This document shows positions 860 to 64,000 of a DNA stretch of 64,000 bases, in pieces. The number at the start of each line of letters is the position of its first letter. The first letter of the stretch is position 1. The stretch comes from Octopus sinensis (Eukaryota). The stretch lies in assembly GCF_006345805.1 (NCBI RefSeq), contig NW_021833028.1, positions 143,463-207,462 of the forward strand, written 5' to 3'. The notes beneath the pieces are model-generated. The model was not told the DNA's origin. It made no database searches and saw only the letters and a list, made by a program, of their open reading frames with translations. The position numbers were made by a program, and so were the translations under genes.

Positions 860-940
860 TATATCAAGAATTAGAAAAATTGACTAACGATTTTGTTTAA
901 AATTTTTCATCTAAATTTTTTTAAGAATTGGAAGCCCGCA

Positions 941-982
941 TAGGGTTAGGGTTAGTTGTTTAAGATTTGAGTTAGGGTTAGG
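941..982 (+). repeat. Short degenerate interstitial TTAGGG-like tract
   Basis: tagggttagggttag...gagttagggttagg read directly from the sequence. Confidence 0.7.
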
Positions 983-1112
983 AGCAGACGAAGCTTTTAT
1001 ATGGAATCTATAATTTTTTTCTATTTTCTAATGTAAATTTTAATTATTATCTCAATTTTAACCGATTTATTTACAATTTTAAATCATTATTTTTTAATGG
1101 TTTTTTAAAGAA

Positions 1113-2776: not shown

Positions 2777-3299
2777 GGTTAACCAAAAATCAGATAGACT
2801 TCTCGATAATCAATAAAAATTGTTGATGTCAGTGGGATGTTGGTTTTTTCGAGATCCCGCTTTTTTCAACATGTACCAAAATTATTAAAAATGAGTATAA
2901 AGTGAGACTTAGAAAAAATTAACATGTATTTTGTATGGTAATATTGCTCAAAAATAAAATTTTGAAAGTATCCATTTATTCGCGTGTCCATTTATCCGAC
3001 TGTGACATCATATATCACTTCAGCTTGTCTCTGCGAATCGTGTAAAATGTTCTGCTCATATCAATGCCCAATATTATGGTTACCATTTCAAATTTTTGGC
3101 ATATGGTAGGAATAGATCTACCTCCTTATATTACATCGGCAATTGATCTTCCAAACCTGAATCCACTTTGGATGATTAATTTCTTTTTATTTATAATAAA
3201 GTAGCTTTATTCAAATAAAATTGTATCAAATCGAAAGTAATTGGACGATCCATGAAAAGTGAAAAAGTAGTCAAATATTGTTTAGTTTAAATTGCAATT

Positions 3300-8939: not shown

Positions 8940-10456
8940 CAGTACCGCTCAAATGTTTCGGACCACCCTATTTTTCTCAATTTCCAAGTCAATCCTAAAT
9001 TATTTTTATACGGTTCTTTAGAGAAACTTATTAGATAAGCTTAAATACATTTATTCTATTCTAAAATTTTCTTTAAATATTTTTGTTTGGCGCCAATTGA
9101 ATATAATTGATTTTTGACTCGATCATATGTTCCGGACCAGTTGCAATCATATGTTTCGAACCAGTTAAATCTCTTTAAATTTAAATAATTTTTGATTCAA
9201 TTAAAAACAAAAGACTAATAAATAACAAATGCCGCGTGTTTCACTGGTTGATCGGGTCGCTATCATCACTTTTTTTAAAGATGGAGCTTCACAAAGAGAA
9301 ATTGCCGAAAAATTAAAAATATCCAAAACTGCTGTTCAAAGAACAATTTCCAGATATTCATCCGTTGGACTATATTCCGACAGACCCAAATCTGGTCGAC
9401 CGAGATTGTTATCCCCAAGATCTGAACGCAAATTAGTGAGAATTTCGAAGCAGACCCCACAAAAACGGCAAATCAAATTAAATTTGATATGAAATTAAAT
9501 TCTATTGTAAGCACAAATACAATTAAAAGATGCCTACAAAGAAATAATTTGAATGGGCGAAAGCAATGCCCAAAACCAAGTCTTTCCATATGCCATAAAA
9601 AGGCTAGAAAAAATTGGTGCATTGAGAAATTAACTTGGAGCCAAAATGATTGGGGTAAAATTATTTTTAGTGATGAATGCAAAATAAATTTGCATTCAAA
9701 CACAAAAAATTATGTTAGAAGGCCACCAAACTCTAGATTTGACTCAAAATATTGTTTAAAAACACGAAAATTTTCTCCTAGCATTATGGTCTGGGGAATA
9801 TTGCTGCAAATGGATGGAGAAACATTGTCTTATGCATTAAAAATGTTGATTCCGCAGAGTATCAGAGAATTATAAATGTTGGACTCGAAAATTTTTATGA
9901 TGAGACCATGTATCTCCAGCAAGACGGCGCTCCTTCCCATCGGTCCATGTCGACAATGAATTTTTTTCAAAGGAAACAAATAAAAATCTTAGAAACTTGG
10001 CCGAGCCAGTCACCCGAACTGAATATTATTGAAAATATGTGGTCGGTACTAAAACAAAAACTTTATGATCTGGAACCAAAAGATCTTCCAGAGCTCTGGA
10101 ATTTGACCAAAAAAATTTGGTACGAGATTGATAATTCGTACATTGAAAAATTATACAATTCACTTCCAGAGCGAATAAATGCTGTTATAACGAACAACGG
10201 AGGAAATATTAATTATTAACTTTTTATAAGTTTAATAAATTTTCGGTTTTTTTAAACTGGTCCGGAACATATGATCGAGTATAAAATCGATAATTTTAAA
10301 ATTGCGCCAAACATGAATATCTGTCCAAGTTTTTTAAATAGAATAAATGTGTTTAAGCTTATCTAATAAGTTTCTCTAAAGAACCGTATAAAAATAATTT
10401 AGGATTGACTTGGAAATTGAGAAAATAGGGTGGTCCGAAACATTTGAGCGGTACTG
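8940..10456 (+). mobile_element. Full-length Tc1-like element with ~200-bp TIRs; transposase 9229..10219 frameshifted
   Basis: CAGTACCGCTCAAATGTTTCGGACC / GGTCCGAAACATTTGAGCGGTACTG termini, TA TSD; HTH, SGRPR, IFSDE, QQDGAPSH and WPSQSPELNIIENMW motifs. Confidence 0.95.
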
Positions 10457-11469
10457 TAGTATCAAATGATAATGGTTAACTATTGTAATGTACTAATTAC
10501 TGATAATAAAAAAATATTAAAAAAATAATACCATGTACCAATTTTTTTTCCATGCACCGTTCGAGTATTTTCCATGTACCAAAAATGGTGTACATGCACC
10601 ACGGTTAAAAATCACTGGTCTAAACCATTAATAAAACAGACTTGACTTTAAGTTGAAGAGAAAACTTACATCATACTCTGAAATTACTTTTTTTATTATG
10701 ACCACTTTTCATGATAAAATAATGCCGGCGACAGAGAAGTTCAATTTTATCGGCGCCGAACGAATTACTAGTTTTTTTTCAATTTTCCGCTTCAAATGAA
10801 GTCTTTAGATTAAAAAGATTAATACTTATCATTTTTAAACAAAAATGATAATCTTTTTCACCCAACCGGCGTCGACCCGGATATTCATATTCTCCGGGAA
10901 TATCCCAATTAACACTTTCTTAATTTGATTGTATTCGGAAATATTTCTAACGTAAAATTAATTTACTTAATTTACTTTTGAGTAGGCCATTTTTAAAGAT
11001 AATTCAATTGAATTTTTAATCAGAATTTTGATTTATCTATACTCTCCCATATATAAATGCTATATTCACTATTTAATACTTGTCCCGCGGTTGTCGTGGA
11101 TAAACGTAAATGGACAAACTTAAAAGTTCTTTTTTGAAAAATATGGCGAGCAAAAAGTGGGGACTGTATTTAGTGGCTGTGCCTTCATACATTTATACAC
11201 CACCGAGTGATTTAGGATGGTTCTGTTAAGCAAAAGTTTTCTTGGAGTGAATCAATGTTCAGATTTTCGAGGGCAAGAAATTCTGCGATTGTGGATAAGT
11301 GTCATTCTCTTGTTTTAATTACTCGCAGAATACCCGACCTCCTCAGAAAGATAGTCGGCTTTTTTAACTTTTGAGAAACTGGAAAAGCATTAATTCGTTT
11401 TTGCAAGATCTTGATAAAATATAATGGACGATGGGAATTAAAAAAGATAGTTTTAAAAATAGTGCTTCA

Positions 11470-19345: not shown

Positions 19346-20700
19346 TTCTTAATTTTTTTTTTATTAAATATAATATTTTCTTCTTTTAGAGAAAGAAGTA
19401 ACCAACACTACTTCTTTATCCTCTGTCATTAAATCAGTTACGATCAATGTAGATGTCTATCAAAAATACTCTCAACCAACAATGGGAAAACTGCGAATAA
19501 ACTAATCCATGACCACATCTCCACTCGTGCTATCAGGATGCTCAAAAACAACAAACTTCTCAACTCTCCCCCCCCGCCGGTCCACTCCTCAGAGCAATCA
19601 CTCGGCAGATATCTCCGTGTCCAGCTTGCTCAGATTCGCTCAGGTCATCATCCACTGATTTTCGAAACATACCGTTCCTTCACCCCCGAAGACCTCTTCC
19701 CCTGTCCTGGACCGCCTCACTTGTCTCCGCCTATTGGGATTCGGGATCTCTGGGAGCGCCCGATCTTCGCGTCTCGCTACCTGATTGCAGCCGGCTTCCT
19801 ACGTGTTAGTGAAGCCGGGATAACATAACTAACTAACTAAATCAGTTACAGCTTCTTTTTCCCCACTTTCTATATCTTCTTCATACAAACGACTTGCTTC
19901 AATTATGAGGCTACTGGCTTAATTTATTCCGTGTCTGTGTTCAACCACCACACTGTCCAGTGTTTTCTCTAACACAACTGACTGTATGTAAGTCCGAGTT
20001 CCGTCTTCGATAGCCAACTTTTTAATGTATTTCTTGAAAAACTTGGAAACGACACCGTCCCAGGTCAGAACCAGTGAAAGTATTTTTACTTTAGGGTATA
20101 GGCTGGACAACTCCCCGGACAATAATTTATGGCATTTCTCAACTTCGCCTTGCTTCAGGCGGTCCTGGGAAGTGATTCCCACTTTGATGAGAGTAATTTC
20201 GTTTTTCATTTTGTCGTGGACGAATATATGTGAATTTTCGTGTCTGTAATTATTGAAGAATCGGCGCGTATTGCAACATTTTTTGTCTCCTGACATAATC
20301 ACTGTTGAGCATTTTTCCACACTGAGTTTCCAAATGACTAACGGTTTTTTTGTCTCTTACGAAATAGTTGCACAATGCTCGCTTGGTTGAAAAAAACAGG
20401 TTTCTATTCTGTAGTAGGCAATAAAATGCTTCACTTCTGGGAGCTACCCGCTTGAGGTTTCTACATAAACATTCTAATCATTCAGGCATTTGAATAATAT
20501 AGAATGCAAAAATTTTCATTCAGTCTTCTTCATTAACCAATTCATCTGAGCGATTTTTATAGACTCATCACAGATGTTTTCTCCGCTTTCAGTACCATAT
20601 TTTGAGGCAAGAAATCCCGCGATCGTTAGTAAATGCAATTTATTTGTTTTAATTGATTGCAGGATCCCCGCCCTCTTCAGGAAAAATGCAAGTAGTTTTA
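19335..20700 (-). mobile_element. R2/R4-like RLE non-LTR retrotransposon, 3' part
   Basis: HIFVHDKMKNEITLIKVGITSQDRL...LTWDGVVSKF...YIQSVVLEKTLDS in ORF 19919..20320. Confidence 0.85.
19442..19837 (+). mobile_element. 5'-truncated Vingi-like LINE 3' end inserted in the R2-like element
   Basis: RVQLAQIRSGH...LWERP...EAGIT* followed by a (TAAC)n tail; 12-bp TSD TAAATCAGTTAC (19430-19441, 19838-19849). Confidence 0.88.
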
Positions 20701-22570: not shown

Positions 22571-22849
22571 CTTGCAGATAGACAGGGGGTCCAGCTCGGA
22601 CTTGCGTAGCTCAGAACGGAGCGGATGTTTTATTTGTAGAATCGTTTGAGGAGTGGTTTCTGGGCACCAGTGATGTGACCACTTATTATTTGTAGAATGT
22701 TTGTACGCCTGTTTTCTTTGTCCGAGATGTTTGAGACATGTTTGTTTAAGGACATGGTTGGGTCAAAGCTAAGTTCAAGATGCTTATGGTTGGTCAGTGT
22801 CAGTGTAGTCAGTGTGGTGTTTGAATAACGGTTTGCATAGTTTCATAAT

Positions 22850-23045
22850 TAATACTGATCATGGACTTGAGTTTTGCAACTCACAGATGATGAAGTTGTA
22901 TGAAGAATTTAAAATTCGTCATGTCAGGGGGAAACCCAGACGTACTTGGATACAGGAATAAGTTAAACGACTCAATCAGAGATTGAAATGGATGCTCAGT
23001 TCTACGTTTTAACCAACGGGAATGGATTTCGTTGGATTGATACCG
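22850..23045 (+). mobile_element. Decayed Ginger2/TDD-like integrase fragment
   Basis: TDHGLEFCN...IRHVRGKPRRTWIQE.V.RLNQRLKWMLSS is homologous to the integrase at 59527-59830. Confidence 0.7.
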
Positions 23046-35081: not shown

Positions 35082-35343
35082 TATTATTTGATTGATGCGT
35101 TGATTCCATTTAAAATGTCCTTTTTCAACCGTTGTCTTGAAAGATGAACTGAAAGGTCACAAGTAAACATTTCTTGTGCTCCAAACACATCCTGGACCAC
35201 ATTTTCTACGGTATTTTGGCGTTTTCTTTGGATTGTCTCCGTAGATTGGTCGTCAGAGAGGTTTCTGTTCACATTGTCAAAAACCAACAAAAGTCAAAAT
35301 ATTCATATTCGACATAAGTGAGCCACCTCATCCAAAAAATAAA

Positions 35344-36035
35344 TGTGACCGGTTCATAATGAGATACGGTTGAATACGAGCCGCTAAAAAGATCGATAAT
35401 TAATATACCGATTCAAAAGGCCAATTACAATAAAGGCAAACGTTCCGAACTAATGATTGAACTTTAAATTTTTGAAAAAATGATGTTTTATATTTGAACC
35501 ATGTTTGCTTTAAAATAGTAAAATTATTTACAATATTAGCAAATTATAATGTGAATTATTTTTATTTTTGATATTATAAATTGCAACATTAGCAAATTAC
35601 AAGTTTGTAACAACTTTAACTCTAATCTTAATTTTAACTCTAACTATAAATGATTTCAACGTTATTTATAAACATATTCATCATAAAAAGACACTAAAGA
35701 AAACAGACCCTAACCCTAATCCCTGACCCTGACGCTAACCCTGACGCTAACCCAGACCCTAACCCTGATCCTAACCCTGACGCCTAACCCAGACCCTAAC
35801 CCTGATCCTAACCCTAACCCTGATCCTAACCCTGATCCTAACCCTGATCCTAACCCTGATCCTAACCCTGATCCTAACCCTGATCCTAACCCTGATCCTA
35901 ACCCTGATCCTACCCCTGATCCTAACCCTAATATGATTTAACGGCATTCACGCCATTTAACGGCTCGTATAACGCCACTTTGACGGCTCGTTTAACGGCT
36001 CGTATTCAACCTGGGCTCGTATTCAACCGGTCACA
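35344..36035. mobile_element. Non-autonomous TGT...ACA element (Ginger2/TDD-like MITE) carrying a telomere-like array
   Basis: Perfect 11-bp TIR TGTGACCGGTT / AACCGGTCACA; subterminal GGTTGAATACGAGCC inverted repeats; 5-bp TSD ATAAA; no ORF. Confidence 0.85.
35708..35931 (+). repeat. Interstitial telomere-like array (CCCTAA variants, about nine tandem CCTAACCCTGAT dodecamers)
   Basis: Read directly from the sequence. Confidence 0.95.
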
Positions 36036-36499
36036 ATAAATAAATTATAGAACAAAATAGATTAATTCTTTTTATCTCAATATAATTCTATATCTCAATA
36101 TAACTTATTATTAAATCGATTTTAAAAATAGATATTTAATTTATAATAGTTTGGTTTGTTTGAGTGTTAATGGGAAAATAGATATTTATTTTATAATAGT
36201 TTGGTTTGTTTTAGTGTTAATGGGAAATTTGACATATTTATTCAAGCCTGGCCCATATTTTTCATATTATTTGAGTCAAATCAGTCAAATTAAACTTATC
36301 CTACTTTCATTCTTGTTGATTTGGATTATACTGTCTTCCTTAGCCCTGGTTTTGCTCTGGTTTATGTATGCCGATACAATAAAAGACAACATTTTGACAA
36401 GTTTCCTTTTTTACTAATTTCAGGCCCATCTGATCTCCCGAACAAATTTGATTAAGAGAAGTTAAATTGAAACTTGTTTTTTGAACTTTTTTAATTGTT

Positions 36500-49919: not shown

Positions 49920-50300
49920 TATTTTGACCAGTAATTTGCCATATTTTGCACAAAAAATGAGGATTGTTGACTATATTTTTCAACATGAAAACGCTCCCAG
50001 CCATATAAAAATGATTATTCAATATTTTCGCGAAAAACATACTAAAAATTAAAAATGACCCTAAAAATCTAGGATTTAAATCCGACAGAGCATTTGTGGG
50101 CTTATATGAGGTTCAAATTAGACAAAGAAAAAATGAGAAAATTCAGGCACTACAGAAAAATCTAGTAGATATTTAGAATTCTATTCCAACAAAAACATTT
50201 GAAAAAAATAGTTGATTTAATTAAAAAAAGGTGTTAGGAGATCTATTCGGAAAAATGAGATTATTCTACATATTTTTAAAAATTATTAAAAGACAGTTAA
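49920..50300 (+). mobile_element. Decayed Tc1 transposase C-terminal fragment
   Basis: IFQHENAPSH...DLNPTEHLWAY remnants. Confidence 0.6.
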
Positions 50301-50439
50301 AAAAGGAGAAAGTTTGTTTAAGACTACGCAATTTAGGACGCCCTCCCACCCTCACGGACTGCGAAACATTTACCGCGGATTACGGCAATGGAGAGGCGTT
50401 GAAGAAGCCAATTTTACAACAACGAAATTTTATGTCTGT

Positions 50440-52080
50440 AAAAGTCGTAGTTTTTTCCAAATTTCTTAGGCCACGACAGAGCACTTCTCAAACTTGATAT
50501 TAAGAACGCATTCAACTGCATCCGCCGGGATCACTTCCTTTCAGTTTTCTACGACCATTTCCTTATATTGTGCCTCCTGGGGCTCTTGTTTTATAAAAGA
50601 CTTAGCTCTCCAATATTCGGATCGAATATTATCCCCTCATGTATGGAGGTTCAACAGGGTGATCCCCTAGACCCCTTCTCTTTGCCTTGGGAATAAATGG
50701 AATAGCCCAGTCGGTTTCTTCCAAACTGAATATTCGGTATCTGAATGACGCCACTATCGGCGGGTCCCCAGATACAATTTTCAAAGATGCTCAATCGTTG
50801 GCACTTTCACTTCTGAAGATTGGACTGGGGATTAACCCCACCAAATCCGAATTAGTCAGCTTCAACCTTGCTGATAAACGCTTTGACCACTTATTATCGT
50901 CCCTCCGCACTAGTCTTGGCCAAGTACGCACGACTGATGTCAACGATATCCGGATCCTCGGATCCCCTATTCTGTCGACCGCAATTAAGAGTGATTTTCG
51001 CATTAAACATTCCACTGGTTTGCTGGACCGCCTCACGATTTTGGACAGCCACGTCGGCTTGTTTCTTGCGAGAAACTTCTTCGCCCTGCCTAAATTACTC
51101 TACTCCTTCAGAAATGCACCTTGTTACCTGCATGAGGACATTCTCACAGATCTCGGTGACTTCCTTCGTTCGAAAATCGAATCTATTTGCAATGTCGAGT
51201 TCGACTCTTTGGGGGTGGAGTCAAGCTTCACTCCCTATACGCCACGGAGGCCTCGGACTCCGGTGCCCGAATGATGCCGCACTGCCTGCTTACCTTTCGT
51301 TACTTTCTTCATGCCAGAAACTCATGGGCACGGTTTTCTCAACCGATTTTGAACATTACGTGCCCTCTAAGTTATCATCGGCGGTCCTGAAGTGGCACTC
51401 GGTAGGATTGGATCTCCCGGAGGACCCGTATAGGCAATTTGTTTGGGACGAAGTCCGCCTTCAATCCCGAATCAAATCGTTCAGTAAATCCCTCGACCAA
51501 CACTGTTTGGCCTGCTTTGAGACGGCCTGTCGTCCTCATAACGGAGCCTGGCTAAATGCTACTCCACTGCCGAGTATTAGGAACTTTCTGGACAGTGAGT
51601 CCGTACGGACTGGAATTTGCTTACGTCTCAGTCTTCGCCTATGCGAGCCACATGTCTGCCGCTGTGGCGCAAAAATCTGTAGCTTTGGACTGCACGCTTT
51701 ATCGTGTAGACGCAGTGCTGGCCGTATCCCGCGGCACGCGGCTCTTAACGACCTTATCAGGAGAGCCGTGAAAGTCGCCGGAATCCCCTCCCTGCTTGAA
51801 ACCACTGGGACCGATCAAGGTGAAGGAAAAAGGCCTGACGGGATCACTGTGTTTCCCTTCAACAGGGGAGAAGCCTCTTACGTGTGTGAACTCTTTCTCG
51901 CCTCAGAACCTGCTGATATACGCATCCGCCCCTGGATCTATTGCCACAACCGCGGAATGCAAAAAGATGCGGAAGTACTCCTCACTTACGGAAAAGTTCC
52001 AATTCCTCCCATTCGCAATTGAGACTTCCGGTCCCTTGGGAGATAAGGCAATCAGCTTCTTTCAGGAGATCGACCGCCTG
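50440..52080 (+). mobile_element. Most complete CRE-like retrotransposon copy (RT, CCHC and RLE), frameshifted
   Basis: DIKNAFNCIRRD, GVQQGDPL, IRYLNDATIGG, GGLGLR, GAWLNA, HVCRCG..HALSC..RHAALND, GKRPDG and PFAIETSG motifs. Confidence 0.92.
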
Positions 52081-52200
52081 AACGCATTTCATTGTGCTAG
52101 AGATCAACCGCCTCTCTGCACACCAAATTACACACTCTTCTATATTATCGCCGAAGAGCCTGTTTAGTGACAATAACCGGTTATATTCTTGCATTATTTG
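52080..52200 (-). mobile_element. Possible Merlin/ISXO2-like transposase N-terminal remnant
   Basis: RLFGDNIEECVIWCAERRLISSTMKC resembles recalled ISXO2-like N-termini; the match is short. Confidence 0.3.
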
Positions 52201-52379
52201 CTCATCAGACTTGATTGACTAAAATTGTAGATTACCATTTCTTAAAGAAAATTTAAATAATTAAATTAATTATTTTCTATTTTATCAGATTTTAAAATAT
52301 ATCAGAATAAAAAATTAAATCATTCTTTGTATAAATTAAGTAAGTTGAAGATTCACCAATATTTATATCGAGGGATGTA

Positions 52380-52880
52380 ACTCCGACTGTTAGAGGATCT
52401 CGGCTTTCGAAACTAAAAGCCTCAACTTCTTCCACCGAATGCAACTGCGAATACTATCCGAAGTATAATGACCGAGACGGATCAACAATGAGGCACTGTA
52501 CCGAAAGTTCTCAGCATGACCCGGGATGTGATGAAGGCCAGATAGAGACTGTTTGAACATGTTCTACGGTTGGACCCGACGTCACCTGCAAATTTAGTTA
52601 TTGAAGAATACCCTGCTGCAAGTGGAAATAAATATCGGGCGTGCCAGCATATTACACTACCGTGGCGCCGCGATCCTAAATCAATCAACCACAGGCTTAA
52701 AAATGGAGACGATCTGGATGCAATGAGGAGTTTAGCATCAACAGGGAAAGATGGACAAAAATTGTCGAGAAAATCGTTTCAAGTGACGCAAGTATGGAAA
52801 TATAACTATTATGTTTCTACGGGAGTTGCCAATAATAATGCGTTCAAAAGAACATAATCCCGAGATCAAGTCAGTAAGGA
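52380..52880 (+). mobile_element. RTE-like LINE 3' fragment
   Basis: LRLFEHVLRLDPTSPANL...TLPW..D...DLDAMRSLA resembles RTE-type C-termini. Confidence 0.6.
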
Positions 52881-53129
52881 GGTGTTATTGTTTTTTTTTG
52901 ATTCTGTCAAATTCCCTGTACAGTCCCTGCCGCATATAATAACGATCTCGATTTTGTTTGAATAAAACGAAGATCCCCATTCCAGAAGTAAAGACCAGTG
53001 CACAAGAAAGCATAAATACATGATAATTGCCACGAGACATAATCTTCACCTAAACTATTAATTAATTATAAAAACAATTTAATCATAAATTAACAAAAAA
53101 TAGCACAATATTATATTTTTTTATTTAAT

Positions 53130-54650
53130 TACTTTCAATAGTTTGCTCACAAAAAGCACAGGAAATCCGACTCACTCCCCTCCAACAGAAGCCTAAAAAA
53201 ACGGGCTGAACCGCTCCTCCTCTCGGTAAAGGAGGTGGAAGATACCTTGCACTCAACAAAATCTTCTTACTCTCACGGCCCGGACAAAATCCCGGTGATT
53301 CTATTAAAAAACCTTGGCGTCGAAGGTGTCAGATTCCTAACATCGATTTTCAACCATTCTATCAACAACAACGTGATTCCGGCAATATGGAAACAGGCCT
53401 TAATAAGGCCGATACTGAAGCCTGGAAGACCAAGAGGGGACCCGGCTTCTTTCAGGCCGATTTTCTGTTATTTTCGATGTCAAAAATCCTGGAAAGACTG
53501 GTTCTTAGCAGAATAGAAGATTTCTTACCCGAAAGACATTTTCAACATGGGTTTAAGAAGGCGAAGTCCACGTCTTCGTATCTCCAATCCTTGTCAAACT
53601 TCATCTGTACCGGTTTTGCCAGCAAACCGAGGCATCAAAAGACAGTGCTCTGCTCCGTCGACATCCATAAAGCCTTCGATTCCGTCTCGAGGAAGCTCCT
53701 CTCAAGGAAGATATTCCAATCCGACTTTCCTCTGAAGCTAAAAATATGGATTACCAGCTTCCTAAGTGGACGAAGGGGAAGGGTGTGCCTCGGTGGTCTG
53801 AAGTCCAAATCTCGTCTTCTACCCAACGGAGTAGCTCAGGGTTCCCCCTTATCCCCGGCCCTCTTCAACTTATTTTTGGAAGACCTCCCTCGCTCCTTCG
53901 ACAACAATGACATCGTTCTCTCATACGCGGACGACATCGTACTAGCCTCACGGGACCGGGACATCCAGAAGGCCTCTGAAAGGCTCCAAGCTAACTTGGA
54001 TCGGCTGAACCTATGGCTGACGGACAACCGGCTTGTGGTAAACGCGGCGAAGTCCGCCACGTCCCTCTTCACCTCGGATAAAAGATTGGGAAGGACGTCA
54101 GTCGACTTAAAGCTGAATAATATATCCGTTTCCTTCTGCAGGAGTCAGACGGTCCTATGGGTAACCTTCGACATGCACCTCTGTTTCTCCCCACATGTGG
54201 AAAACCTCCTTCGCAAATGCGAACAAAAATTGAACATACTACGAACTCTATCTGGAATATGGAAAAACGGGTCGCACCCGGTACTGGCGAATATCTACCG
54301 CCAGTACTTCGAACCTTGTGTTGCGTACGCTTGCGGATCATGGGGTCCGCGGCTATCGTGGTCCAACAGGAGGCGAATCGAGGAGGCCCAACAAAGGGCC
54401 CTCAGATTAACCGATCGTTGGTCACATGATAGCCAACGCCCCGGTCCAGCCTCTCTGGAAGACCTCACCAAGCTGAACCTGGGCCCGTCAGCGATTGCTC
54501 CGCCAAAAACGGCCTGCCGCCCTGTGCGATCTTGTGTGGGCTCGTGGAAAGATCACCGAGCGAGGATGAGGTCCCTGGTTGAATGCATCGGGATCACGTG
54601 ACGTTTGTTCGGTTTTTAGCGTGGTCTTGGTGATTAAATAAATAAATAAA
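53130..54650 (+). mobile_element. Vingi/Ingi-like LINE, 5'-truncated, RT nearly intact
   Basis: GPDKIP, QHGFKK, VDIHKAFD, GVAQGSPLSP and YADD motifs; ends ECIGIT* followed by (AAAT)n. Confidence 0.92.
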
Positions 54651-55400
54651 GGGCGCTAAAATGCAAAATTGCCGGGAAGGCAATGCTCCCAGATATGGGT
54701 GGCCTACCCTGCTTCAGTGCTTCAATCGACGTTTTAGCTTGAACCCATCGTTAGGTGGACTGAAGAAGCTGGCCAAGATCCCTCCTCCTGGCTCACGGGG
54801 GAGGACTGCCGCTGCGATTACGTCGTCAGGATGCCCCTCGTGTTCTCAACACACGAACACCAGAGTAGCGAGTTTTCGTACTCTTGCAGGTTAAAAAGAT
54901 ATTTAGTAGGCCTATCTCTGCATATCTTGTTGTACACTTGCGGCCGCAAAGTGACCAGAAAGATACCTCGGTGGCAACTCAGGAGTGACGTGATGGGTTC
55001 CATCAATCGTGTTATAGCTTACGCGATCGTGCGTAAGGCTCCGGAGACAATGGACGAAACTTCTCTCTATTTGTACTCGGCACAGACAACCTATGATAAA
55101 ATCACCCAGAGGCCTGCCCCAAAGAGTAGATGGAGGGAGAACATTGCCGCTAAAATAGCCACAAGAAAGGCCGAGCTGGAAGCGCTGACTGGGCACATTC
55201 TGAATGTGAGCAATGGGGTCAAGGGCATGACTCCCACCTTGGTGCGTACTTTACTTCTTCGGGAACGAGCTGGAAAATGGGACCTCAACGAGTTGAGCCG
55301 TGTCTGGGCAGAGAGGGAGGAGCTGATTCTCGTTTATCAGAAGAAGCTCTCAACTCATGAGTCTCGGTTTCAGCGCAGGCGGGAGAACAACCTGTTTGAG
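54650..55400 (+). mobile_element. R2/R4-like element, N-terminal (pre-RT) region
   Basis: LYSAQTTYD...SRWRENI...VYQKKL..HESR..RRRENNLFE is homologous to 32200-32560. Confidence 0.7.
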
Positions 55401-56010
55401 TTTAATCTCAGGTTGTGGAAGGTCTTTGAGTGCACGATAATTGAAAATGTAAGAAGAGTGCTGGCAGAATTCCTCGCCACACTCACCTCAATGACGTCGT
55501 GAAAAGGGCACTAGAGTCGGCAGGTTTCCCCTCCACTCTAGAGCCAGTCGGCCTCTGCCGGAGTGATGGAAAGCGTCCTGACGGGATGACTACCTTCCCT
55601 TTCAGGGAAGGCAAGTCCCTGATTTGGGATGCAACTTGTGTTGACTCGTTCTCCGCGTCGGTGTTACTCAAGTCCATCACTAACCCGGGTTCCGCCAGTG
55701 CTCAGGCTGAGGAGGCTAAGAGGTCGAAGTATGGAAATATTTCGGACTCTTACGAGTTTGTCCCCCTCGCCTTCGAAACATCTGGAATTGTCGGCAGGTC
55801 TGCGACTCGCCTTCTTGCCGACATTGCCAGGAGAATTGCCAGGAACACCAACGGCCGGAGGGAGACGAGCTGGCTCTTCCAGCGAATCTCGGTCGCGGTG
55901 CTCCGCGGAAACTGCCACTGGATACGCAGTGCGGCGACTTTGAGCTGACCTCCAGGCTCTTTATTAATTCGTGTATTACTTATTCCCTGTATCATACCTA
56001 ATAAAAATTC
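55400..56010 (+). mobile_element. CRE-like 3' portion with intact RLE ORF 55499..55948
   Basis: KCKKSAGRIPRHTHLND...GKRPDGMT...WDATCVDS...PLAFETSG...FQRISVAVLRGN*; AATAAA and A-rich tail. Confidence 0.92.
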
Positions 56011-57013: not shown

Positions 57014-58227
57014 TTATCTATAAATATAATCATTCCTATGAATTTGTGCATTTCTAAAATAGTACGTGGAAGGAGGAGAGTGATAAAACACACCATCCAA
57101 CATTAAAACACAACCAAACCTGTCAATATACCGGATTCAGGATCTCCTAATTCCAATTCAGACCTTTGTAGCATTACGTCCCTTCCACACAGATCTGAAA
57201 AAAAATCATCACCAAGCTGTGATGAAATGTGCCCCAAAACAAGATCACAGTCCCCAAAAAATTCAACATCAAAAGTAAAGTCAGAAAGTGGTTCACGATT
57301 AATGAGGATTTGTGGAACTGACCCCCGAACTCTGTCTAAAGAGTCGCACATAACGAACCAACGGGGGATTGAGGACACCGGATGGACACTGAGAGAAGAG
57401 CCAATCACAAGGACGAGGTCACACTTTTCAATGTCATGTTCCAGACTCGAATAAAAATGGGATCCGAGCTGTTCCCCAAAAAACACAATTTCAGGTTTCA
57501 TGACTCCTTCACCACAAGATACACATCTAGGAACATTCTGTTCGACTATATGGTCCTTGAGTAGTTCAGTCTTCACTCTGTCCCCACAAATCATACACAC
57601 AGAATGGGAAAAGGACCCATGGCATTCCACGAGATGTTCAATTCCGGCCAATCTATCCAGACCGTCAACATTCTGAGTGTAGCAGTTCAATAACTTGCCC
57701 TGACATTCCAGTTGTCGTACAAATTTGTGAGTAAGACCAGGTTGGGCATCCAACATGAGCAGATCCTGAGATGAAATGGAAAATCTTACACGACATATTT
57801 TGTAGAATGGACGAGGATTGTTTTGGAAAAATTTCAGGTCAAAAATGTCGGTTGGAGAAGAGAGTTCGGGGAACTCCTTGCTCAATCGAGCATATAGTCC
57901 GTCACTTGATCGGAAGTCCGGAATTCCACAAGAAACGGAAACCTGTGATGAATACACAAAATAGTGAACCCCTGCACCGCACAGAACCAGAATTGATTTT
58001 GACTCTTGAATGATAGATACGACGTCAGCAATGGTGTTTACATTATCTAGTTTCTTACGACGAATGTTAAGTAAGGAGTAAATGTTAAGTAAGGAAAGTA
58101 ATTCGACGTCGAAACCTGCAAATAGTTATTGCGTAGGTACTAGAATCATCATAGTCTTCATCGCTCGAAGACAATTCCTAATGTTTAAAAAGGTATTCAA
58201 TACAAATTCCGATACATGGTGATTCAT
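57014..58227 (-). CDS. SIRT1: NAD-dependent deacetylase sirtuin 1
   Basis: RRKKL..VNTIAD...LVLCGAG|VSVSCGIPDFRSSDG, YTQNVDG, VECHGSF..C..C...C..C, KPEIVFFGE, VIGSSL and QILINREPL motifs; last exon YHSPPSTYYFRNAQI. Confidence 0.93.
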
Positions 58228-58674: not shown

Positions 58675-58777
58675 AAAGGACCTCCCCAAATTGCATGATA
58701 TATTACGTAATTCATTACATAATATAAAGTACCCCAACATTCTCATATCTAGGGAGATCCTTTAATTGCGTAATATA
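58675..58777 (+). repeat. Degenerate unit of the 84-bp satellite, left of the Ginger-like insertion
   Basis: aaattgcatgatatattacgtaattcattacataatataaagtacccc matches the satellite consensus. Confidence 0.7.
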
Positions 58778-60290
58778 TGTCACCGGTTTTATAGCCCACT
58801 GGGTTGGATAACCCACCTACTGCCATATTTTATAACAATAATATTTTTCATATATTTAATTTCATTGGAAAAAATGATTTTCTTAATTATTTTAATAATA
58901 TTTTGTTCTTTTTTTAAATATTTTAGCGTGAAAACTCTAACTTTTTATTAATAAAGTTTAAAAACTGTGAAAATAAGTAGGGTTGTTCAATAAAGTTCAA
59001 TTAAAATATGGTTCTTTTGAAATTAACGACAAACCAACTTAATGAAATAAAAAATTTTGATGACACCACTACTATATACGATAAAGAGAAAAGGAGAAGG
59101 CTCAGGACGCTTAAAAATCGTTATGCTTCAAAGTTCCTGAAAAAACGTATATAAAAGTCGGAAATAAAAAACTGCGTTTTTTTACTCTAGAAGAAAATGA
59201 GCTAAAGTTAAAAATTATTGAGGTATCTATTTCAAAACAATTGAAGATCGAGCATATGAATACTCATTTTGGTAGAGACAGAATGCTATCGTTACTAAGA
59301 GACCAAATATATTCAGTAACAAGGGAAGAAATTTGTAATGTGATAGGAAAATGTGTCTATTGCCAAGTAATGTTGTTAATCAGTGTTAGTCGAAAAATTT
59401 CATGGCAACAAAATCAACTATCACCCCCATAATTGCAAGAGGACCTAGAGATCGGTATATTGCAGATTTAGTGGATCTGACCTTAACAGTAATTATGGAT
59501 GGGTCTTTTTTTTGAATAAGTCATAGTTGGTTGTTGTAATCGACTCTTTTTCCAAATTTGCAGTGGTAAAACTCGCAAAAACGAAATCAGCTGAAGAAAT
59601 AACAAGAAAGTTAAAAAAGATTTTCTTCTCAATCCGACCCCCGTTTATCTTGCAAACAGACAACGGGAAAGAGTTCAAGAATAAATGCATGGAATTAATG
59701 TGCTCCGAATTAAACATCACTCATATATGTGGACGACCTAGAGCACCCTGGGTTCAGGGGCAAGTGGAGAGGTTTCTTATAGTCAATTTATTTGTAGGTT
59801 TAATCAATCAATTAAAAGATGGATTAGCTCTACAAGTGCATACAACAGAATGCTAGGGAAATTCAAGGATTTTTATCGAGAAATTGTATACAAATATAAC
59901 TCTACACAACATGAAACTACCAAATGGGCGCCCTTCAAAATTTTTATGGGGGATAAAAGAGATTCGGAGAGAACAGAAATCAAATAAATGCATTGTTAAT
60001 GTTCGACGGTACAAATCCAGAACAAAGTGATGAGTCAAATTCGAATTATTTTGAAAATGGCGATAAAAGAACTGAGAGAAACAAGTGCATGAAAACCTTT
60101 TTAAAGCTGGAGAGAAAATGAAAAAACGTCGTAAGTGGAAATATGACGCAGAAGACATTGAAATTGGAGATACAGTGCTGCTGAAACACGACAGGGATGA
60201 TAACCCTGGTAACCGGAGATACCCATTATATGACGAACTGGATATAAGTACACAGTTTCAGAAAAATTTGAAACTACGTGTACTATTAAT
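58778..60290 (+). mobile_element. Ginger2/TDD-like DNA transposon (H2C2 zinc finger and DDE integrase) with tiny introns; right end lost
   Basis: Starts TGTCACCGGTT; EHMNTHFGRDRM...CVYCQ, YIADLVD, IDSFSKF, LQTDNGKEF and GRPRAPWVQGQVER|FNQSIK motifs; introns at 59223-59246, 59367-59389 and 59772-59797. Confidence 0.88.
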
Positions 60291-60640
60291 AAAGATAATG
60301 GAGAATCATCCCGTGTGTGATGACATGGGATGGACTGGTCACCAAATACCACAAGCGGTACTTAAGACAGTTGGATGTAGATAAGTCTCTACAGGCTTAT
60401 ATACAGTCAACTGTTCTTAAGAGGACTCTGGAGAGTGTCTCGTTTGATGCTCGCCGATCCAGCCCTTTCCTGACGTTTAGTCAGCAAGAGGCGCTGGACT
60501 GCACCTTCTCGAAGGTCTACAGTGCCAGAGAAGAGGAGGAAGAAGGGGAGGAGGTGCTTGGAGTGCCGCCTTCTGCTTACTTCAAAGGCTCTGGACTTAG
60601 TTAGTAAAATTACTTAGTTAATAAGTTTCTTTCTTAATAA
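60290..60640 (+). mobile_element. 5'-truncated R2/R4-like 3' end
   Basis: MMTWDGLVTKYHKRYL...AYIQSTVLKRTLES; AATAAA at the end. Confidence 0.85.
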
Positions 60641-60644
60641 AGGT

Positions 60645-63600
60645 ATAATGTACTCAATTTATTACATAATCTCAAGTACCCCAATATCTTATCTAAGGAA
60701 CTTGTTAAATTACATAATATATTACGCAATTTATTACTCAATTTATTACATAATCTCAGGTATCCCCATATCTTCACATCTACGGACCATCCAAAATTGC
60801 ATAATATATTACGTAATTTATTACTCAATTTATTACATTATCTAAAGTACCCCATTTCCTTAGATCTATGGACCTTCCAAAATTCAATGATATATTAAGC
60901 AATTTATGACGCAATTTATTACATAATCCCAAGTACCTTCATATCCTCATTTCTATAGATCTTGCAAAATTGTATCCTATTTTACGCAATTTTTCTCGCA
61001 AGTTATAACATAATCTCAAGTACTCCAAATAGTCACATCTACGGAATTTCCAAAATTGCATAATATATTACGAAATTTATTACTCAATTTATTACATTAT
61101 CTCAAGTACCCCCATATCATATGCAAGGAACTTGTTAAATTGCATAATATATTAAGCAATTTATTACTCAATTTATTACATAATCTCAAGTACCCCCATA
61201 TCATATGCAAGGAACTTGTTAAATTACATAATATATTACGCAATTTATTACTCAATTTATTACATAATCTCAAGTACCCCCATATCATATGCAAGGAACT
61301 TGTTAAACTACATAATATATTACGCAATTTATTACTCAATTTATTACATAATCTCAAGTATTCCCATATCATATGCAAGGAACTTGTTAAATTGCATAAT
61401 ATATTACGCAATTTATTACTCAATTTATTACATAATCTCAAGTACTCCCATATCATATGCAAGGAACTTGTTAAATTGCATAATATATTACGCAATTTAT
61501 TACAAAATTTATTACATAATCTCAAGTACCCCCATATCATATGCAAGGAACTTGTTAAATTACATAATATATTACGCAATTTATTACTCAATTTATTACA
61601 TAATCTCAAGTACCTCCATATCATATGCAAGGAACTTGTTAAATTGCATAATATATTACGCAATTTATTACTCAATTTATTACATAATCTCAAGTACCCC
61701 CATATCATATGCAAAAAAACTTGTTAAATTGCATAATATATTACTCAATTTATTACTCAATATATTACATAATCTCAAGTAACCCCATATCATATGCAAG
61801 GAACTTGTTAAATTGCATAATATATTACGCAATTTATTACTCAAATTATTACATAATCTCAAGTACCCGAATATCATATGCAAGGAACTTGTTAAATGTA
61901 TAATAATTACGCAATTTATTACTCAATTTATTACATAATCTCAAGTACCCCCATATCATATGCAAGGAACTTGTTAAATTGCATAATATATTACGCAATT
62001 TATTACTCAATTTATTACATAATCTCAAGTACCCCCATATCATATGCAAGGAACTTGTTAAATTACATAATATATTACGCAATTTATTACTCAATTTATT
62101 ACATAATCTCAAGTACCCCCATATCCTTACATCTACGGATCATCCAAAATTGCTAATATATTACGCAATTTATTACTCAATTTATTACATAATCTCAAGT
62201 ACCCCCATATCATATGCTAGGAACTTGTTAAATTACATAATATATTACGCAATTTATTACTCAATTTATTACATAATCTCAAGTACCCCCATATCATATG
62301 CAAGGAACTTGTTAAATTACATAATATATTACGCAATTTATTACTCAATTTATTACATAATCTCAAGTAACCCCATATCATATGCAAGGAACTTGTTAAA
62401 TTGCATAATATATTACGCAATTTATTACTCAAATTATTACATAATCTCAAGTACCCGAATATCATATGCAAGGAACTTGGTAAATTGCATAATATATTAC
62501 GCAATTTATTACTCAATTTATTACATAATCTCAAGTACCCCCATATCATATGCAAGGAACTTGTTAAATTGCATAATATATTACGCAATTTATTACTCAA
62601 TTTATTACATAATCTCAAGTACCCCCATATCATATGCAAGAACTTGTTAAATTGCATAATGTATTACGCAATTTATTACTCAATTTTACATAATCTCATA
62701 CGTGCAATTTATTAAGCAATTTTATTGCATAATCTCAAGTACTCCCATATCCTTACATCTACGGACCATCCAAAATTGCTATATATTACGCAATTTATTA
62801 CTCAATTTATTACATAATCTCAATTACCCCCAGTACCATCATATGCAAGGAACTTGTTAAACTACATAATATATTACGCAATTATTTTACTCAATTTATT
62901 ACATAATCTCAAGTATTCCCATATCATATGCAAGGAACTTGTTAAATGCATAATATATTACGCAATTTATTACTCAATTTATTACATATCTCAAGTACCC
63001 CCATATCATATGCAAGGAACTTGTTAAATTACATAATATTTACGCAATTTATTACTCAATTTATTACATAATCTCTCAAGTACCCCCATATCCTTACATC
63101 TACGGATCATCCAAAATTGCTAATATATTACGCAATTTATTACTCAATTTATTACATAATCTCAAGTCCCCCCATATATATGCTAGGAACTTGTTAAATT
63201 ACATAATATATACGCAATTTAATTACTCAATTATTACATAATCTCAAGTATCCCCATATCATATGCAAGGAACTTGTTAAATTACATAATATATTACGCA
63301 ATTTATTACTCAATTTATTACATAATCTCAAGTAACCCCATATCATATGCAAGGAACTTGTTAATTGCATAATATATTACGCAATTTATTACTCAATTAT
63401 TACTAATCTCAAGTACCCGAATATCATATGCAAGGAACTTGGTAATTGCATAATATATTCGCAATTTATTACTCAATTTATTACATAATTTCAAGTACCC
63501 CCCCATATCATATGCAAGGAACTTGTTAAATGCATATATATTACGCAATTTATTACTCAATTTATTACATAATCTCAAGTACCCCCATATCATATGCAAG

Positions 63601-64000
63601 GAACTTGTTAAATTGCATAATATATTACGCAATTTATTACTCAATTTATTACATAATCTCAAGTACCCCCATATCATCATATGCAGGAACTTGTTAAATT
63701 GCATAATTATTACGCAATTTATTACTCAATTTATTTCATAATCTCATACGCAATTTATACGCCAATTTATACATATCTCAAGTACTCCCATATCCTTACA
63801 TCTACGGCTCATCCAAAATTGCATAATCCTTACGCAATTTATTACTCATTAGTACTCAATTTATTCATAACTCATACGCAATTTATTACGCAATTTATTA
63901 CATAATCTCAATACCCCCATATCATTACATCTACGTACCATCTAAAATTGCATAATATATTACGCAATTTATTACTCAATTATTACATAATCTCAAGTAC
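60645..64000. repeat. 84-bp AT-rich tandem satellite (about 40 units, running off the window)
   Basis: Unit ATTGCATAATATATTACGCAATTTATTACTCAATTTATTACATAATCTCAAGTACCCCCATATCATATGCAAGGAACTTGTTAA; degenerate at 60645-61050, homogeneous afterwards; minor variant unit contains CCTTACATCTACGGA. Confidence 0.97.

Follow-up and report, generated by a model that had tools for sequence, protein, structure and literature searches.

The 692-bp element at positions 35344-36035 of a 64,000-nt stretch of DNA (the window) carries an internal array of telomere-like repeats, and its sequence supports assignment to the non-autonomous cut-and-paste elements of the Ginger2/TDD kind, as a miniature inverted-repeat transposable element (MITE). 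The window represents the last 64 kb of contig VCDQ01001185.1 (207,462 bp) in assembly GCA_006345805.1, the proteins of which are labelled Octopus sinensis; the DNA is most probably that of a dicyemid, as discussed below. We favour, with a probability of about 60%, the explanation that the element is a non-coding Ginger2/TDD-like MITE of this probable dicyemid and that its telomere-derived array is a hitch-hiking satellite.

The MITE is bounded by perfect 11-bp terminal inverted repeats (TIRs) of the sequence TGTGACCGGTT, located at 35344-35354 on the plus strand and at 36025-36035 on the minus strand; the right terminus, AACCGGTCACA, is the exact reverse complement of the left one. Both flanks carry the 5-bp target site duplication (TSD) ATAAA (35339-35343 and 36036-36040), and the chance of such a flank match at the local base composition is about 0.001-0.004. 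These ends and flanks verified the element, perfect TIRs and 5-bp TSD that had been proposed in an earlier reading made from the letters alone (the sequence-only reading). At 80% identity, the inverted repeat reaches 45 nt. The left TIR comprises the 7-nt tip TGTGACC and the beginning of the first subterminal repeat. A 15-nt subterminal repeat, GGTTGAATACGAGCC, presumed to be a transposase binding site, is present once at the left end (35368-35382, plus strand) and twice in tandem at the right end (35997-36028, minus strand; copies at 35997-36011 and 36014-36028), and 12/23-bp repeats akin to the subterminal motif (TTTAACGGCTCG) are found at 35950-36003 on the plus strand. The longest open reading frame (ORF) of the element, 58 amino acids, is a read-through of the array and leaves the element without coding capacity. 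Short and non-coding, with TIRs, a TSD and an internal array, the element has the features of a tandem-repeat MITE. Ten ORFs of the window, including that of the array, gave no exact match in the protein collection, and the exact look-up of one window ORF returned no gene record. Matches to the tip and subterminal motif in metagenome contigs (L002 and L003) lay in unrelated coding sequence and were discarded as chance. A 50-bp unit is tandemly duplicated with 96% identity at 36125-36227, 90 bp to the right of the MITE.

The array was delimited by Tandem Repeats Finder at 35709-35929, with the C-rich strand on the plus strand (221 bp; period 12, 18.8 copies, 85% matches, consensus CCTAACCCTGAT), and it contains ten exact copies of the 12-mer. 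This is consistent with the tract of about 220 bp of CCCTAA variants, homogenised into a dodecamer, that the sequence-only reading had described. The array is internal, 365 bp from the left end of the MITE and 95 bp from the right end. When the array sequence was parsed, perfect CCCTAA hexamers amounted to only 5 of roughly 37, and all hexamers differed from CCCTAA by at most two changes (CCCTGA, TCCTAA, CGCTAA, CCCAGA). The 5' third is heterogeneous, with CGCTAA, CCCAGA and CCCTGA variants and a duplicated block of about 36 nt, and identical 12-mers follow one another in the 3' part; homogeneity at one end points to recent local amplification. Telomerase synthesis would leave perfect repeats. 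Mutated hexamers arranged in higher-order repeats therefore indicate growth by slippage or unequal exchange, not by telomerase, and a telomerase-made tract, whether a healed break or a true telomere, was rejected on account of the five perfect hexamers, the 12-bp higher-order unit and the element sequence on both sides. Upstream of the array, a decayed hexamer tract at 35614-35643 on the plus strand reads CTTTAA CTCTAA TCTTAA TTTTAA CTCTAA, that is, (YYYTAA)5. It is the single run of at least four YYYTAA units in the window, against none in 200 shuffles, which bears out its earlier description as AT-eroded and hexamer-phased. On the G strand of the array, GGG runs as read from the sequence are spaced 12 nt apart with GG between them, and the predicted G-quadruplex potential is weaker than that of true TTAGGG telomere DNA.

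To place the element in a superfamily, the integrase genes of its relatives are informative. The integrase translation found proteins with the Pfam domains rve and Integrase_H2C2, and the nearest named homologue was 'KRAB-A domain-containing protein 2-like [Octopus sinensis]'. Residues H17, H21, C50 and C53 (HHCC) and D80, D137 and E173 (D,D35E) were invariant in alignment A2; a GPY/F motif was not noticed in the C-terminal region of this alignment, no search having been aimed at it. The closest solved structures were those of the Ty3 integrase and, next, the prototype foamy virus (PFV) integrase. A gapless alignment of fourteen ends revealed a common layout: TGT[C/G]AC[A/C/G] comes first, and behind it stand two tandem repeats, about 16 nt long, whose sequence is characteristic of the subfamily. 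The first five nucleotides were TGTGA, TGTCA or TGTGG at 14 of the 14 ends, in agreement with termini of the form TGTNR...YNACA. Perfect 5-bp TSDs were found at five elements (ATAAA, ATGCT, AATTA, TAGTA and TTTAT), and the flanks TAATA/TGATA of the element at locus L007 form a 5-bp TSD with a single mismatch. Two complete relatives, L006:9165-10928 and L010:450-3903, are bounded by TIRs and contain no reverse transcriptase or RNase H, as in cut-and-paste transposons; since the former holds an integrase and nothing else between its TIRs, it is a DNA transposon and not a long terminal repeat element.

Ginger2 elements have TGTNR termini and AT-rich targets, with a 5-bp TSD in TDD-4 and TDD-5 (PMC2836005); the TSD of Ginger2 is either 4 or 5 bp (PMC10045372); and KRBA2 sits inside the Ginger2 clade (PMC3575427). 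The TGTNR tips, 5-bp TSDs, AT-rich targets, HHCC and D,D35E motifs and KRBA2-like nearest homologue therefore argue for a Ginger2/TDD placement, and the assignment made in the sequence-only reading was thus upheld by TIR-bounded integrases that lack a reverse transcriptase. IS3EU, GingerRoot, IS481EU and Polinton were rejected on the grounds that they have no HHCC and have 6-bp or other TSDs or TA..TA ends, and Ginger1 on the grounds of its CCGG/CCGT targets (PMC10045372, PMC6839031, PMC2836005). In detail, the elements resemble the Ginger2/TDD transposons of Bao, Kapitonov and Jurka (2010, PMC2836005) in their integrase-type DDE transposase with HHCC and no reverse transcriptase, their TGTNR...YNACA termini and AT-rich targets, their 5-bp TSD, which is that of TDD-4 and TDD-5 of Dictyostelium, and their KRBA2-like nearest named homologues (PMC3575427). 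They differ in four respects. The TIRs are 11-55 bp long (11 bp perfect in the MITE; 34 and 42 bp, and about 55 bp, among those of L006 and L007) and are built of a 7-nt tip and two tandem repeats of about 16 nt, whereas those of Ginger2/TDD span about 50-180 bp, a descriptive range and no mechanistic criterion. The TSD is 5 bp, whereas 4-bp TSDs are described for metazoan Ginger2. The integrase gene has spliceosomal introns of 23-31 bp, and members carry telomere-like tracts, of which no description for Ginger elements was found.

These GT..AG mini-introns of 23-31 bp are located at positions common to the integrase copies of the window (59371-59393, about 59502-59525 and 59777-59802), L006 (9658-9688 and 9816-9840) and L007 (10119-10145 and 10392-10417); the homologues P0001 and P0004 are uninterrupted and lack them. 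The notion that the apparent frameshifts of the window copy are pure decay was rejected, because three of them are GT..AG mini-introns; one true frameshift and a stop remain. The transposon gene has acquired the ultra-short introns of its host.

Several sister elements delimit the group. The complete element at L006:9165-10928 is 1764 bp long, with 34-bp TIRs (TGTGACAGTCCGAATAAAATACACGCCGAATAAT), the TSD AATTA and an integrase as its sole content. A second, different non-autonomous element at L006:1320-7537 has the TSD ATGCT and ends TGTCACAGGTTTCATTTTGGACC... and TGTGACCGGTTTTATTTTGGACC..., which match over 42 nt at about 90% identity; it shares the tip of the MITE and has two GGTTTTATTTTGGACC subterminal repeats at each end. 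Its array is 1.29 kb long and consists of 44-bp units, each with two perfect CCCTAA despite AT-rich spacers; it agrees with the array of the window MITE in both strand and side. The L006 locus was obtained for its integrase and not for an array. A LINE (long interspersed nuclear element) fragment and an hAT element with a perfect 8-bp TSD (ATCTAAAC) are nested in this element. The autonomous copy at L007:9483-13645 has TIRs of about 55 bp, with a Tc1-like element and another TIR element nested inside, and its 3' non-coding part contains, just past the integrase stop, TTAGGGTTAGAGTTAGGG (TTAGGT TTTAGA GTTAAT...TTAGGG TTAGAG TTAGGG). Another array, decayed and containing four TTAGGG (period about 25 bp), is found at L007 13740-13850, 100-200 bp outside the right end of this element; it may be what is left of an array-bearing element, or else a target that insertions prefer. 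The element at L005:9540-16891 has the TSD TAGTA. A complete related element was also found in the microsporidian Enteropsectra breve (L010:450-3903; JALPMN010000416.1), with the TSD TTTAT and perfect TIRs of 30 bp that are composed of two TG[C/T]GCCATTATCATAA repeats in tandem; no doubled TTAGGG-, CCCTAA-, TTAGG- or CCTAA-type repeat was present in it. In the window, a solo end of another Ginger2-like subfamily (TGTCACAGTCGGATAAATGGACACGCGAATAAATGGATAC; 2963-3007, minus strand) is similar to the TIR of the complete L006 element. A short telomere-like tract (TAGGGTTAGGGTTAG ... GTTAGGGTTAGG; 930-985, plus strand) probably belongs to the interior of the element whose end is at 3007. Tract and end are about 340 bp apart when the LINE nested between them is discounted; the left end of this element was not found. 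Further decayed integrase relics of the same family occur at 22845-23006 of the window and at L007 8442-8867.

The window also contains an integrase-coding relative, the left end of which (58778-58817, plus strand) reads TGTCACC + GGTTTTATAGCCCAC + GGTTGGATAACCCACC. Its edge coincides with the break of a satellite: an isolated 84-bp satellite unit is located at 58701-58778, and the satellite resumes at 60651. Since TGT stands at the exact satellite break, 58778 is an insertion boundary. As the sequence-only reading had noticed, the element starts with TGTCACCGGTT, one base different from the terminus of the MITE. For an 11-mer with one mismatch, 1.19 matches are expected per window, and at least three were seen in 13 of 100 shuffles; taken alone, this match is a weak link between the two elements. 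In addition, GGTTG[A/G]ATA was found at the identical offset 25-33 in the MITE ends and in 58778-58822 by gapless alignment, and an integrase gene follows downstream of the left end on the same strand. The link accordingly holds through the motif at a shared offset, the satellite boundary and the integrase gene.

The integrase gene itself (59008-60300, plus strand; HHCC, D,D35E; mini-introns of 23, 24 and 26 bp) is decayed. At least one true frameshift near 59470, inside DLVDL/DLNSNYGW, and a premature stop near 59985 were observed, and the copy is, to judge from its sequence, non-functional. In place of the 3' part of the element, and with no right TIR, LINE-tail-like sequence occupies 60310-60650 on the plus strand; no right end (AACCGGTGACA) of the 58778 element was found within one mismatch. 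The LINE tail from about 60310 is also present in L005. ORFs with '...TWDG[LV]V[TS]K...' are found at 60317-60604 and 19919-20320 (minus strand) of the window and at L006 11732-11923, and they are putative LINE-type tails. The TWDG-type ORF abuts the integrase remnant at window 60317, and its L006 counterpart is located past the right end of the 9165-10928 element, at a distance of about 0.8 kb. The subterminal repeats GGTTTTATAGCCCAC and GGTTGGATAACCCACC resemble but differ from the GGTTGAATACGAGCC of the MITE. Because these repeats differ and the copy is decayed and 3'-truncated, the 58778 element is a relative and no demonstrated mobilising partner of the MITE. The integrase/MITE pair of the sequence-only reading is thus retained at the family level, by the tip and the position of the subterminal motif, and is not sustained as a specific pair. 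The satellite, with its 84-bp unit and a 252-bp higher-order period, extends over 60651-63986 and continues to the contig end; the isolated unit at 58701-58778 indicates that the element and the LINE tail interrupt the satellite array.

Telomere-like tracts recur in this transposon group. A scan of 126 kb in 18-nt windows, allowing at most 2 mismatches to (TTAGGG)3, detected four tracts, all four within or beside Ginger2-like elements, where 0.05 are expected per 64 kb. The sequence-only reading had considered absence of the array from most copies; on this small sample the opposite was found, a second subfamily carrying a larger array and an autonomous copy a short tract. In the literature searched, telomere repeats were not reported from within Ginger elements or MITEs.

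On the hitch-hiking explanation, a retroviral-type DDE integrase with HHCC, provided by an autonomous relative, would act in trans on the MITE, as its family suggests. The enzyme would recognise the 7-nt tip TGTSACM and two tandem subterminal repeats of 15-17 nt, and, to judge from the family and the TSDs, would cut at the CA-3' ends and insert the element into AT-rich DNA with a 5-bp stagger. The array would have its source in ancestral elements, whose non-coding part probably held a short telomere-repeat tract of the sort that an autonomous copy still shows. This tract would have mutated and then been amplified in situ via replication slippage or unequal exchange, giving the 12-bp unit in the window MITE and the 44-bp unit in the sister subfamily. 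Transposition would then disperse interstitial telomere-like arrays. MITEs with hitch-hiking micro- and minisatellites are well documented (PMC6947457). We infer that the array has no telomere function, and to regard it as an acting telomere would be speculation.

A number of observations weigh against this explanation. Three of the four scanned loci were selected for carrying an integrase and the sample is small, so the association of tract and transposon is biased. The tract does not keep one orientation relative to its nearest end when the MITEs are compared with the autonomous copy, so simple inheritance by internal deletion is at most conjectural. The non-array parts of the MITE had no similarity to any other element in the window and the other loci compared, and its origin from one of the sampled autonomous copies through internal deletion is therefore conjectural as well. 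The MITE is present in a single copy within the window, no further copies were found in the other 62 kb examined from the same assembly, and no empty paralogous site was detected, the flanks having no second copy within the window; mobility of this subfamily is thus deduced from structure. None of the sampled loci yielded an intact cognate integrase whose subterminal repeats match those of the MITE. Finally, a tract in three or four subfamilies exceeds what is expected of a simple passenger, and selection could act on it.

That last point leads to the alternative that comes closest, which we nevertheless regard as rather improbable: the tract would be a functional module of the transposon that binds a host telomere-repeat-binding (Myb/TRF-type) protein and is kept by selection on the element. 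Such a module could anchor the excised DNA or the transposition complex, steer insertion to particular chromatin, or provide the integrase gene with a terminator or an insulator. The tracts in two MITE subfamilies and just past the integrase stop of an autonomous copy are in line with it, as are the tie of all four tracts to this transposon group and the two perfect CCCTAA in every 44-bp L006 unit despite AT-rich spacers. However, the complete autonomous element at L006:9165-10928 and the microsporidian L010 element do without a tract, which is thus not universal in the group, neither position nor orientation of the tract is conserved between elements, the hexamers of the window array are mostly mutated, and no binding protein is known in this host.

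It is less probable still that the association is accidental, the elements having inserted into or near pre-existing interstitial telomere-like DNA, with the tract as target, or the arrays being independent of them by chance. The decayed TTAGGG array that lies beyond, but close to, the right end of the L007 element and the autonomous L006 element, only 1.6 kb from the array-bearing one, could be explained in this way. In the window MITE and the L006:1320-7537 element, however, the array lies inside the TIRs, and the TSDs ATAAA and ATGCT are non-telomeric and outside the TIRs, which argues that the array was carried by the element or grew inside it.

The sequence-only reading had also raised breakage and telomere addition, and we consider it very unlikely that the arrays act as sites of chromosome breakage or de novo telomere addition, for example in DNA elimination or circle formation in the dicyemid soma. 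Telomere-derived tracts are indeed spread here by a mobile element, and Noto, Yazaki and Endoh (2003, in Chromosoma) reportedly described, for Dicyema japonicum, circular extrachromosomal DNA under developmental control; nothing on DNA elimination or circular DNA in dicyemids came up in the literature searched. A dicyemid is also the probable host (PMC13644364, PMC6736024). Against this reading, the window contig ends in the 84-bp satellite and at none of these arrays, the arrays sit in ordinary flanks with intact TSDs, and telomerase would not leave mutated higher-order units. Equally unlikely is the broader idea that a dicyemid Ginger2/TDD-like lineage keeps a telomere module as functional cargo, supplying telomere-protein sites for breakage and healing or for circle excision in the course of the somatic genome changes that have been reported from dicyemids; if true, such cargo-module transposons would be an animal counterpart of the telomere-bearing elements of ciliates.

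Both a Ginger2/TDD MITE and a tandem-repeat MITE are known kinds of element, and the recurrent telomere-derived repeats are the unusual feature. The window MITE resembles the tandem-repeat MITEs, such as (GTCY)n of insects, Xstir of Xenopus and the pearl/BIV160-type elements of bivalves, in being short and non-coding with TIRs and in having a core tandem array of a kind that is enlarged in situ and dispersed by transposition (PMC6947457). Those elements are Tc1/mariner-, hAT-, PIF- or Helitron-like, whereas here the unit is derived from the telomere hexamer and the superfamily is Ginger2/TDD. Interstitial telomeric sequences are likewise TTAGGG/CCCTAA tracts away from chromosome ends and often degenerate; unlike them, the present tract lies within an element bounded by TIRs and TSDs, with dispersal by transposition and not by chromosome fusion or telomerase repair of breaks. 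The telomere-bearing elements (TBE) of Oxytricha are also DNA transposons with telomere-repeat sequence in a host of unusual genome dynamics. In TBE the telomere repeats are at the extreme termini. The repeats of the MITE, in contrast, are internal, degenerate and of higher order, and the enzyme is an integrase, whereas TBE encode a Tc1/mariner transposase (PMC11956929), so the MITE does not belong with TBE.

The origin of the DNA was examined from its genes. A SIRT1-type gene at 57103-57957 (minus strand) shows at most 47% identity to anything else among 5.8 billion clusters, and a 27-bp in-frame GT..AG intron (57958-57984, minus strand) splits its conserved GAG|VSVSCGIPDFRS motif. The clathrin heavy chain gene on a 1.29-Mb contig is very compact. 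Among animals, intron lengths of less than 30 bp are known only in myxobolids and Dicyema (PMC13644364). O. sinensis harbours D. japonicum, a species whose genome has 36.7% GC, 49% repeats and many LINE ORF2 copies (PMC6736024), a description that the window fits in GC, repeats and LINE ORF2; the D. japonicum genome paper makes no mention of telomeres. The ultra-short introns, the divergent SIRT1-type protein, the compact genes and the match to the D. japonicum genome suggest that the window is most probably dicyemid DNA contaminating the Octopus sinensis assembly, and the dicyemid host guessed in the sequence-only reading is thereby strengthened.

Contigs of up to megabase size, one of them 1.29 Mb, in the public Octopus sinensis assembly are thus probably parasite DNA. 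Ginger2/TDD is a small and little-studied superfamily that links DNA transposons to retroviral integrases, and the elements described here provide a compact and well-delimited set from an animal whose genome ranks among the most reduced on record: a 1.76-kb autonomous element, bipartite ends, a 5-bp TSD and non-autonomous derivatives. The recurrent association of transposon and tract would offer a concrete mechanism for the spread of interstitial telomere-like arrays and a lead for dicyemid genome dynamics.

At least two further contigs, VCDQ01000492.1 (1.29 Mb) and VCDQ01011016.1 (64 kb), are also dicyemid-like: their introns measure about 25 bp, their genes are compact and their proteins very divergent. 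Some genes on the dicyemid-like contigs are annotated as octopus proteins. Within the window, a GC-rich block at 50000-56000 (up to 52% GC against about 34% around it) consists of LINE reverse transcriptase and C-terminal ORFs, and may represent one or several young retrotransposon insertions.

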